Below are positions 3,101 through 17,441 of a stretch of DNA of 64,000 nucleotides, piece after piece. Under the pieces are notes generated by a model. That model was not told where the DNA came from and ran no database searches. It saw nothing but the letters and a program-made list of their open reading frames with translations. Numbering within the stretch: the stretch's first letter is position 1; each line of letters starts with the position of its first letter. Position numbers and translations under genes: made by a program. Origin of the DNA: Bugula neritina (lineage: Eukaryota; Animalia; Bryozoa); the NCBI GenBank assembly GCA_964035545.1, contig OZ037767.1, positions 2,243,680-2,307,679 on the forward strand, written 5' to 3'.

Positions 3101-6100
3101 CTCAAAACTGCATCCTATCAAGAAAGGCAATCCATATTCATATTCTAGACTGTTTGCATAGCTTTTCTGCATTGCAACTAAATAATTGAAAAACTGAGTT
3201 TCTGTTTATTTAAAGCCTTCTATCCTCACTTCAAAGTCAACTACCTGAATCTTGGTCGTAGTGTTTCTTTCTATGGAAAATACACTTTGAAAGTGGTAGG
3301 GGGAGGCAACACTTACAAACAAATGAGAAAGTTCTCTGCTGAGGAAATTAGGCTTTATAACTCTTTCAACCAAAGGTTTGCTTCTTTCTAACCTGCTGCA
3401 AATAGAAGTGTTTGTTGAATTACTCTCTTGGCTACAGGTTTTGTAAAGTACTGCAGTTGTGTCATCTTATATACTATTTATTACATTTACTTTTCAACTC
3501 CAGTTAAAAGATATAGTTAGGGTTTCCTTTGGCAATAATTAGTGTGATTCTCTCTCTCTCTCTCTCTCTCTCTCTCTCTCTCTCTCTCTCTCTCTCTCTC
3601 TCTCTCTCTCTCTCTCTCTCTCTCTCTCTCTCTCTCTCTCTCTCTCTCTCTCTCTCTCTCTCTCTCTCTCTCTCTCTCCTACACATTTCTGTACTCGTAG
3701 TGATGGAAAGCAACCAGATTCCCTAATGATCACCCCTGAACAATATTTTCCGCGTGAAACCCATGATGGCTACCCAGTCTATGATTCTAACAACAATGCC
3801 ATCAACTGGCATTGTGACAGGAAAAGTGATTGTTACTACCCACCTCTCTCAGAAGATGGTATTCCAGAATACTTTTTCCTGCTCAAGTTTTCTAACTTGT
3901 AAGTTGCTACTTAGTTGTTGGGGAATTACTTAATTGCTAAGTTAATCACCTGTATCTGCCCAACACTATTGATAATAGTGTTGGGCAGATACAGACTCTC
4001 TGAAATTATATATATATATATATATATATATATATATATATATATATATATATATATATATATATATATATAGGCCTATATATATTTTTGCAAGAGTAAT
4101 ATGCTGCTAGGGTACCAATATCTGTGGCTTCTATTTTGATAGAGATGTTGATCCTACCACCAACTGTAGATTTGAGTTTCAATTTGTTGTGAGAGTGTTT
4201 GGATACAAGATTGGCCAGCAAGATTACGGTGTGTTATTGGTGAGTAGCTGGACTCATTCTACTACACTCAGCTCTAAATGTATTGTGGGTAATATGACTG
4301 CACAGGTTTCCTGTTTGTAGGGCACAATACTAGTGATGACTACGTACGTTATCTTGTTCTACTTTTGGAAGACCAGATATCATTGGCTAGCTATACTGCA
4401 TCGTAAAAAAAGTCCTGCAATAAAGAAGATGCTTTCTATTGGTCGACTTACAGACATAGGTGAGTATAGCCACCTTTCTGATGGAGTAGTACCTTGACTT
4501 GCAGATGTATGTACTACGTATGTGTATGTTTTACACAGCCTCTCAAGCCTTTCTCAAGAAAACACTCATAGAAGCCATTTATACAGAAAATCATGCGATG
4601 ATATCACAAGCATTGACTAAGTCTGAATTTGCTAAACAAATTTCCCCATCACCTGATACTGAGATGTCATCTACTGACAAGGTTGTAATAGCTTTTCCTT
4701 TATGCGAGAATTGATAACACTCAAATAAATTTTGTATTACATTATTCTCACAAGACTTTTTGTCTGCACCTTCTATCAGCTGCGTATTATATTATTATAT
4801 TATTATTGTTTTATATTATTATATTATTGTTGTATTTTATTATACTAATATTGTGTTTTACTAATAAATTACTATTGTATTATATTGTTATATTGTTATT
4901 GTATTATATTATTGTTATATTACTATTGTATTAGGTATATTAATATATCATAATTGTATTATATTATTATTGTAATATATTATTATACTATTATTGTATT
5001 ATATTATTTAGGTATTTTAGACATATAAAGCTTTTGCTTCTTTTTAAAAAACATGGTTACATTATTAAAAAGTTTTAGGTGTAATAATTAAAACGTGGGC
5101 ATCTAGCATGGCTGTTTGAATGCAGTAATTGCGATGAATATAATATGATATGTATATGAAGATGATACCGTAAAAGAAAAGCACCATTAGCATTTCATTT
5201 GACTTAATGTAAATCTTATTTAAATCACTTACAGTTTATTAAATAATTTAACAGACATTCTTTATTGACCAGGGTTAGCTTTCATAGCATGCAGTGTAGA
5301 CTTGTGATGACGTATTCACCACAATTCTTAATATTATTTTCTGTAACCATTCTTCTCTCTTCATTGCTAATATTTTATTACTTGTTGGTTTAGAATGCCT
5401 TTAAAGATATTTTAAAGAAGAAATTAGAGAATCAAATTAATGAACATGATATTCGTGGAATGGGCATCACAGTTGCCGTAAGCTATGATAAGTATTTACT
5501 AATATTATGACTGTTTTTCTAAGGTTAAAAATTATTTAAACATCTTTTCTCTAAATTATGCAACATTGCTATCAGTTGAGGATAATAATTTATTGGAAAT
5601 CTTGTCTTTTCATTTGAAATTATTAACAGGAAATGACAAAACACAACATGTTTGCTGATCCTGATAAAAGTAAGTTAATGGATAAAGCCAAGCAAATACT
5701 GGCCAAGAAGGCAATGGCTGTTCTACAGCTCCTAGACGCCATCAACAGTCATGTGAGTAAAATTTCTGTCCAGAGAACTGATTATAAAAGCTATTTCGCA
5801 CTGAAAAGTGACTTGAGCTTACATCTTCTAGTTGTTTATATTTATTATGTTTTAATTATATCTAAATTAACTTTTTGCTGTTGTCTAAAGTCGTTTGCAT
5901 CTACTTATAATCATTTTAATTATTTTTTGTGCTATTTCTGGTAGATTTTTAAATTAGCTATACTACCTGTCTTACTTAAGTACTTCTAGAAACTTCTACT
6001 TTAGAACTATAAAGATGTAGCAGAAGCTCTAGAGAACTATGAAAATTTTATGCCTGAAGACTCGGCTGACACTAACCCTTTAATCAAACAAGCTACTGAC

Positions 6101-17441: not shown

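Follow-up and report, generated by a model that had tools for sequence, protein, structure and literature searches.

CatSper, the calcium channel by which sperm are steered, is controlled in some species by lipids and steroids, acting through partners that are poorly understood. The four large auxiliary subunits of the channel have been described as extracellular "canopy" proteins almost devoid of a cytoplasmic part, and mammalian CATSPERG, the gamma subunit, is a single-pass protein with a large ectodomain and a short cytoplasmic tail. Here we describe a locus in a 64,000-nucleotide stretch of the genome of the bryozoan Bugula neritina (C3:2243680-2307679 of a 216-Mb assembly; hereafter the window), where we consider it likely that one gene, present in four copies, encodes a CATSPERG subunit whose short cytoplasmic end is replaced by an extension of ~1,300 residues. 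This extension would comprise an array of helical repeats, a strongly constrained middle domain and a Sec14-type module that likely includes a GOLD domain. According to a 2026 comparative paper, auxiliary CatSper subunits are largely conserved among species, with strong length variation limited to CatSper1 (PMC13674862), and the report of a gamma subunit in Ciona does not mention such a tail (PMC10652287). Our literature search found no paper joining CatSper or CATSPERG with Sec14 or CRAL-TRIO, and the database searches described below returned no annotated relative, in agreement with an earlier note on this DNA, written from its letters alone, which knew of no such architecture. Pending proof from transcripts, the locus may thus encode a known channel subunit whose cytoplasmic architecture is new to the literature searched.

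The window is AT-rich (~35% G+C) and eukaryotic, with GT-AG introns. On its plus strand, in the copy that we term A, the transmembrane (TM) exon (exon 1, 4321-4459) encodes the TM helix and ~30 basic cytoplasmic residues, contains no stop codon and ends in the donor G|GTGAGT, the last two points being as recorded in the earlier note. An independently built chain of 26 exons, the TM exon included, runs open from there over 4,038 nt, corresponding to 1,345 amino acids and a TAA at 17439-17441, and all of its boundaries are AG...GT; the earlier note had arrived at the same figures. The bounds of exon 24 (16595-16707) and of exon 26 (17269-17441, with an AATAAA at 17643) were fixed through the paralogue, copy B. 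An extra exon at 15999-16108 was tried and dropped, because copy B shows the real acceptor at 16594/16595 and the chain totals match without it. The last ectodomain exon, which also carries the start of the TM helix, spans 4143-4239 (+); its end, previously placed at 4241, was corrected to 4239.

The same chain recurs three more times in the genome. Copy B is an inverted paralogue on the minus strand, lying tail to tail with copy A, with the two stops ~1.56 kb apart. All 34 copy A exon pieces were recovered in copy B in reverse order (32851 to 19007), with amino acid identities of 56-100%, most exons falling between 85 and 100% and the lowest being G1 (56%) and E2 (68%). Its TM-to-tail chain (29549 to 19004, −) consists of a TM exon that matches that of copy A and carries a GTGAGT donor (29411-29549), followed by 25 tail exons (19004-29334), and remains open over 4,032 nt. 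Its CATSPERG ectodomain exons (29629-39000, −; 5′ end approximate), arranged in exon blocks conserved with copies C and D, extend to ~39,000, and copy B is complete inside the window, whereas the start of the copy A gene lies upstream of it. Copies C and D are both complete and stand in tandem at C3:10.537-10.563 Mb and 10.565-10.588 Mb, 8.3 Mb from the window; the paralogue in which the earlier note had seen the chain mirrored is therefore one of three. Chain length is 4,038 nt in A, C and D and 4,032 nt in B, the difference being one in-frame 6-nt deletion in exon 2; all four chains are open, and AG/GT is present at every exon boundary in copies B, C and D.

Across the whole genome, four CATSPERG genes and four tails were detected, and they never occur apart. 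A genome scan with CATSPERG_C (PF22846) picked out the four copies, with 35-42 bits each, and no other place, and the CATSPERG exon at 3702-3898 (+) had exactly four genome matches, one per copy. Exon 10 of the repeat array and the Sec14 exon likewise had four matches each, in constant order and orientation and each beside CATSPERG. No stand-alone copy of either the CATSPERG half or the tail half was found in the genome.

The divergence among copies allowed constraint to be compared along the chain. Between copy A and copy C or D, the synonymous divergence (dS) was ~0.5 in all blocks. The CATSPERG exons had a ratio of nonsynonymous to synonymous divergence (dN/dS) of 0.14 and exons 2-15 one of 0.16; the values were 0.07-0.14 in exons 16-18, 0.08-0.10 in exons 19-23 and 0.21 in exons 24-26. 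The range over blocks was 0.07-0.23, the exception being a value of 0.60 for the noisy 46-codon TM exon (A vs C). Purifying selection acts on every block, and the CATSPERG half and the tail are of the same age and under the same kind of constraint. Values of 0.07-0.23 in nearly all blocks at a dS of ~0.5 indicate that the chain is not a product of chance.

The bridge between the two halves is preserved as well. Three copies have the exon 1 donor G|GTGAGT and one has G|GTAAGT, with acceptor and phase preserved throughout; the codon split across the junction between exon 1 and exon 2 (4539-4681, +; phase 1 acceptor) is GCC or GCA, a synonymous change only, and encodes Ala in each copy. The 6-nt deletion is the only indel in exon 2, and intron 1 carries an insertion of ~35-38 nt in copy D. 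The ratio of the proportions of nonsynonymous and synonymous differences (pN/pS) was 0.19 for codons 1-19 of exon 2 and 0.14 for codons 1-22 of exon 3 (5394-5477, +; coding from its first codon), both stretches lying upstream of any Met within their exon, and 0.61 for the codons read through the exon 1 donor. The low ratios from the first codons onward imply that exon 2 feeds exon 3 and is itself fed by upstream sequence in the same frame. Taken as a gene model derived from sequence, the fusion appears strong.

The identity of the upstream half as CATSPERG, as claimed by the earlier note, was supported by two kinds of match to a single exon. The exon piece at 3227-3373 (+) scored 33.7 bits against CATSPERG_C (PF22846; cut-off 27.6), and its 49 residues matched residues 925-969 of the 1,145 of mouse CATSPERG2 (7eeb_F, E 8.7e-6), with E values of 7e-6 to 9e-6 over 7eeb_F and 9ubw_F. 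In the exon-by-exon scan, two further pieces matched the start and the end of CATSPERG_Ig-like (PF22851) in the correct order, namely 1584-1712 (+; E 2e-4, profile positions 2-28) and 2262-2394 (+; E 0.016, profile positions 80-113), with 21.7 and 15.6 bits, neither of which reaches the 27-bit cut-off. The remaining ectodomain pieces of copy A, all on the plus strand, are those at 746-988 (the in-frame part, conserved in B, C and D), 2031-2144 (92% identical in copy B) and 2690-2842 (90% identity with B, C and D), besides those at 3702-3898 and 4143-4239 mentioned above. No Pfam match for the N-terminal ectodomain was obtained among ten exon-size pieces of copy B; the ectodomain measures ~1,200 residues over ~15 conserved exons, a total size that fits CATSPERG. 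After the matched stretch, mouse CATSPERG2 continues for 176 residues and the Bugula protein for ~147 to the end of the TM exon, which places the donor ~20-25 residues before the mammalian protein end. The TM exon encodes a hydrophobic helix and then a basic stretch, which fits a cytoplasmic continuation. In its CATSPERG_C and below-cut-off Ig-like signals, its large ectodomain and its single TM helix near the position of the mouse protein end, this half thus resembles mammalian CATSPERG (7eeb chain F). The differences are that mouse CATSPERG ends ~20-25 residues past the point at which the Bugula TM exon ends, whereas the Bugula gene model has ~1,300 further residues if the splice is used, and that four paralogues are found here compared to one or two in mammals.

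Several observations weigh against one continuous gene of this kind. The tail was searched against Pfam, the PDB and fold collections exon by exon, the joined chain being used in the local length count, the repeat comparison and one pairwise alignment; in the Pfam scan of all tail exons taken singly, none exceeded any cut-off. All database relatives are genomic exon-size open reading frames (ORFs): a HMMER search with the Sec14 exon against 1.84 billion representative proteins returned no annotated protein and only three such ORFs, on contigs of 0.7-1.4 kb that are too short to show linkage to CATSPERG, and word-index searches with exon profiles returned similar genomic fragments only. The sole public sequencing run containing this DNA looks DNA-derived and gives no RNA evidence for the splice. 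In each of the four copies, the 79-nt intron (4460-4538) contains an in-frame ATG that is 5-7 codons ahead of exon 2 and not separated from it by a stop, so an independent start of the tail is conceivable; and every copy has a weak donor at exon 2 (GTTGTA in copy A, and GTAGAT, GTTTGA and GTTGGA), which would permit a short isoform ending after exon 2.

The intronic ATG, the missing RNA proof of the junction and the position of the TM exon end, close to that of mouse CATSPERG, are what one would expect if two adjacent genes had been duplicated together, with CATSPERG reading through the TM-exon donor to a stop 12 codons on (in copy A) and a gene for a soluble protein of repeats and Sec14-GOLD starting at that ATG. 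We consider this quite unlikely, since the consensus donor is kept in 4 of 4 copies, even through the change from GTGAGT to GTAAGT, together with the phase match, since the codons read through the donor evolve nearly neutrally, and since neither half stands alone in the genome; moreover, the promoter of the second gene would fall inside a selected coding exon, and the 3′ end of the first would overlap the second on the same strand with no kept polyadenylation signal. The weak exon 2 donor bears on another arrangement, in which one locus yields two products, an abundant short CATSPERG that ends after exon 2 by intronic polyadenylation and a minor long form. Reading through that donor meets a stop after 1-2 codons in C and D, 11 in A and 21 in B, and copy A has an AATAAA 43 nt past exon 2, but its position is not kept in B, C and D, and no polyadenylation hexamer at a common place after either exon 1 or exon 2 is kept across the four copies. 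Since the tail is under no less constraint than the ectodomain, to which it is linked in every copy, and exon 3 requires an upstream coding exon, we assign this arrangement a similarly low probability. That the chain is not expressed at all, being the result of decay, chance arrangement or an assembly artefact, is favored only by the lack of RNA data and seems extremely improbable given four open copies with the low dN/dS reported above (bar the noisy 46-codon block) and given the behavior of its relatives. JGI metagenomes 3300003318 and 3300002729 and Logan runs SRR4020080-83 contain host-derived contigs with ~90% DNA identity to copies A and B, introns included, which probably derive from a sibling species within one species complex; these contigs keep the exons, and distant homologues of the exons (34-36% identity) keep the exon ends. 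In the sister-species metagenomes the TM-exon junction was sought with a TM-exon profile, which found none, and with a 20-nt pattern, which gave two chance matches.

Coming to the tail of the fusion gene itself, chain residues ~47-680 form a tandem array of about a dozen helical repeats of ~50 residues. Windowed self-comparison gave the best off-diagonal offsets at 46-51, 96-104, 147-155, 201-211 and 251, with window scores of 41-49 against 32.4 ± 3.3 for shuffled sequences (maximum 40). In copy A the array is carried on the plus strand by exon 4 (5630-5752), exon 5 (6005-6136), exon 6 (7157-7268), exon 7 (7646-7890), exon 8 (8067-8252), exon 9 (8658-8790), exon 10 (9120-9361), exon 11 (9466-9626) and exon 13 (10449-10636), the last with a clear repeat; all of these are kept in copy B, as are exon 12 (10176-10300, +) and exon 14 (11693-11828, +). 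Modeled alone with AlphaFold, exon 10 folded into three helices with a mean predicted local distance difference test (pLDDT) score of 86.7. No Pfam family, HEAT or other, was assigned to the array (HEAT_EZ at E 0.13 at best), and no PDB match of the exon 10 model in Foldseek had an E value under 2. A long helical segment follows in exon 15 (12755-12969, +), with only weak, below-cut-off Pfam hits of coiled-coil type. We therefore call this region a HEAT-like helical repeat array: of the "helical rod" proposed in the earlier note, the helical character holds, now with a ~50-residue periodicity, and the rod is not proven.

Repetitive DNA was also noted in the introns of this part of the gene. 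The intron between exons 5 and 6 contains a minisatellite with a 32-bp unit, present in 26 units in copy A (6298-7129) and in 5 in copy B (27698-27857). Two further insertions lie in tail introns of copy A, one at 10688-11345 with 1.9 copies of a 349-bp unit, and one of ~570 bp at ~11930-12500, the halves of which resemble inverted repeats on reading.

The middle domain comprises exons 16 (13069-13191), 17 (13366-13569) and 18 (13925-14005; kept in copy B), all on the plus strand, and with ~140 residues is the most constrained part of the tail. The earlier note had likened it to the microtubule-binding domain (MTBD) of dynein, on a likeness that amounts to a few motifs seen by eye in exons 16-17. 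This identity found no support for exons 16-18, as profile, hidden Markov model (HMM) and profile-profile comparisons were all without signal. A genome scan with the dynein stalk/MTBD profile (PF12777) yielded 63 matches in ~15 dynein genes and 0 in the tail, exon 17 had no Pfam match at E 1 or better, an exon 17 HMM found nothing among the genome's dynein MTBD exons with hmmsearch, and hhalign of the exon 17 profile against these same exons gave a probability of 1.7% (P = 0.029) over 11 columns. In contrast to the dynein stalk, the sequence following the middle domain of the tail shows no evident long antiparallel coiled coil. Searches of the PDB and a look-alike search of the ESM Atlas with exon 17 returned no usable match, and its AlphaFold model, with two helices and a pLDDT of 58.6, was poor. 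The middle domain is thus strongly constrained, helical and without recognizable relatives.

The module downstream of it was compared to a canonical SEC14L2-type gene (CRAL_TRIO_N, CRAL-TRIO, GOLD) located on the contig of the window, 1.2 Mb away (C3:3459000-3465400), whose exons match PF00650, SEC14L2 residues 194-256 (E 1e-18) and the GOLD domain of SEC14L3. A colinear local alignment of the tail with this gene scored 118, compared to 34.6 ± 4.8 for shuffles, and begins in exon 19 (14176-14353, +; a linker and the start of the CRAL_TRIO_N-like helices) or in exon 20 (14772-14884, +; CRAL_TRIO_N-like), so that CRAL_TRIO_N helices precede the domain. Exon 21 (15007-15174, +) supplies the first part of CRAL-TRIO, exon 22 (15323-15476, +) its core and exon 23 (15562-15776, +) its C-terminal part; aligned by hhalign with two consecutive CRAL-TRIO exons of the canonical gene, exons 22 and 23 gave P values of 1.5e-5 and 6.6e-5, respectively, and the exon 22 alignment stops at the same exon end as the canonical exon. 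Two CRAL-TRIO introns are common to the tail and the canonical gene, one of phase 0 after exon 21 and one of phase 1, the intron position and phase at exon 23 being as in the canonical gene. When a profile of exon 23 included two distant homologues (34-36% identity), its top PDB match was the Sec14 protein SFH5, at the homologous place and weak (E 0.22); the exon-by-exon PDB searches otherwise returned nothing usable. Judged by these alignments, exons 19-23 are of Sec14 type. What the earlier note had called Sec14 is supported in this way, without any CRAL_TRIO profile exceeding its cut-off exon by exon: CRAL_TRIO_2 in exon 22 (E 0.12) was the only exon-level Sec14 match in Pfam, and none of the 21 places listed in the PF00650 genome scan falls in the tail. 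A profile hit, which the note had named as a check for either half of the protein, was accordingly obtained for CATSPERG_C and not for PF00650.

For the last three exons the argument is one of gene structure. The putative GOLD region of the tail consists of exon 24 (+; acceptor fixed by copy B and by a sister-species contig, phase 2 donor), exon 25 (16854-17005, +) as the putative core exon and exon 26 (+) as the putative last one. In both the tail and the canonical gene, a phase 2 intron lies just before a C/W-x-F motif and a phase 1 intron passes through a Tyr codon before the last exon, and the core exon between them measures 152 nt in the tail vs 155 nt in the canonical gene, with the same flanking phases of 2 and 1. 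Profile and sequence searches gave no signal for the GOLD part. The domain named in the earlier note is therefore likely to be GOLD by its shared intron positions and phases, and not by its sequence. The whole last module likely derives from a SEC14L2-type gene, of which the gene at C3:3.459-3.465 Mb would represent the kind of source.

Two local features of this module concern its acceptors. Through a 42-nt duplication (14923-15006), exon 21 has gained another in-frame acceptor at 14964/14965, use of which would lengthen the protein by 14 residues; in exon 20, two acceptors in the same frame are separated by 12 nt (14772/14784). These sites may serve as alternative acceptors. Elsewhere in the assembly, the small contigs C188, C86, C255, C154, C125 and C193 contain intronless matches to Sec14 and dynein that read through many TAA and TAG codons, which fits a ciliate contaminant.

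Compared to SEC14L2, SEC14L3 and SEC14L4, which are of the tocopherol-associated protein type, the tail module is very divergent, with no exon reaching the Pfam cut-off. Behind the LP motif, the four tail copies have YG in place of the conserved GG, which the distant homologues keep. The SEC14L proteins are soluble and of ~400 residues, whereas here the module would form the C-terminal end of a membrane protein. The combination of a Sec14 domain with spectrin repeats is known from Trio/Kalirin, MCF2/Dbl and SESTD1. These proteins share with the Bugula tail a Sec14-type domain beside a long array of helical repeats; they differ in having the Sec14 domain N-terminal, spectrin repeats of ~106 residues and no GOLD domain, and in not being channel subunits.

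If the fusion gene is expressed as modeled, the extension may have arisen when CATSPERG captured a downstream gene, by loss of its stop and splicing onward, an event that would predate the duplications to four copies. The ectodomain and TM helix would take the same place in the CatSper complex as their mammalian counterparts, the repeat array would extend into the cytoplasm as a long arm beneath the channel, and the middle domain and the Sec14(-GOLD) module might bind a partner and a lipid, respectively. The Sec14-type pocket could then sense lipid or deliver it to the channel, or the arm could anchor rows of channels to cytoplasmic structures. In its most specific form, the proposal is of a CatSper with its own lipid sensor, a Sec14-GOLD module on a ~630-residue arm under the flagellar membrane, where lipid occupancy or cytoplasmic or axonemal binding would gate or position the channel in cis; we offer it tentatively and regard it as rather doubtful. 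In mammals this job of lipid gating or positioning is thought to be done by separate proteins. If true, this would be the first lipid-binding domain built into the CatSper complex and a natural experiment on the coupling of the channel to lipids or to the flagellar interior. The locus would also illustrate cleanly how genes can fuse when a stop is lost and exons are captured, with later duplication to four copies. Its value is limited by the non-model organism and the unseen transcript.

Outside the two gene copies, the window contains a further gene on the minus strand upstream of copy B (~45200-49350); one of its exons is TPR-like, and ORFs of the same strand contain long CT-rich microsatellite tracts. 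At 58623-63551 (−) lies an intact ORF of 1,642 residues for the polyprotein of a Ty3/gypsy-type retroelement, in which protease, reverse transcriptase and integrase motifs were recognized by eye; it sits in an island of 52-60% G+C, compared to ~35% for the genome.

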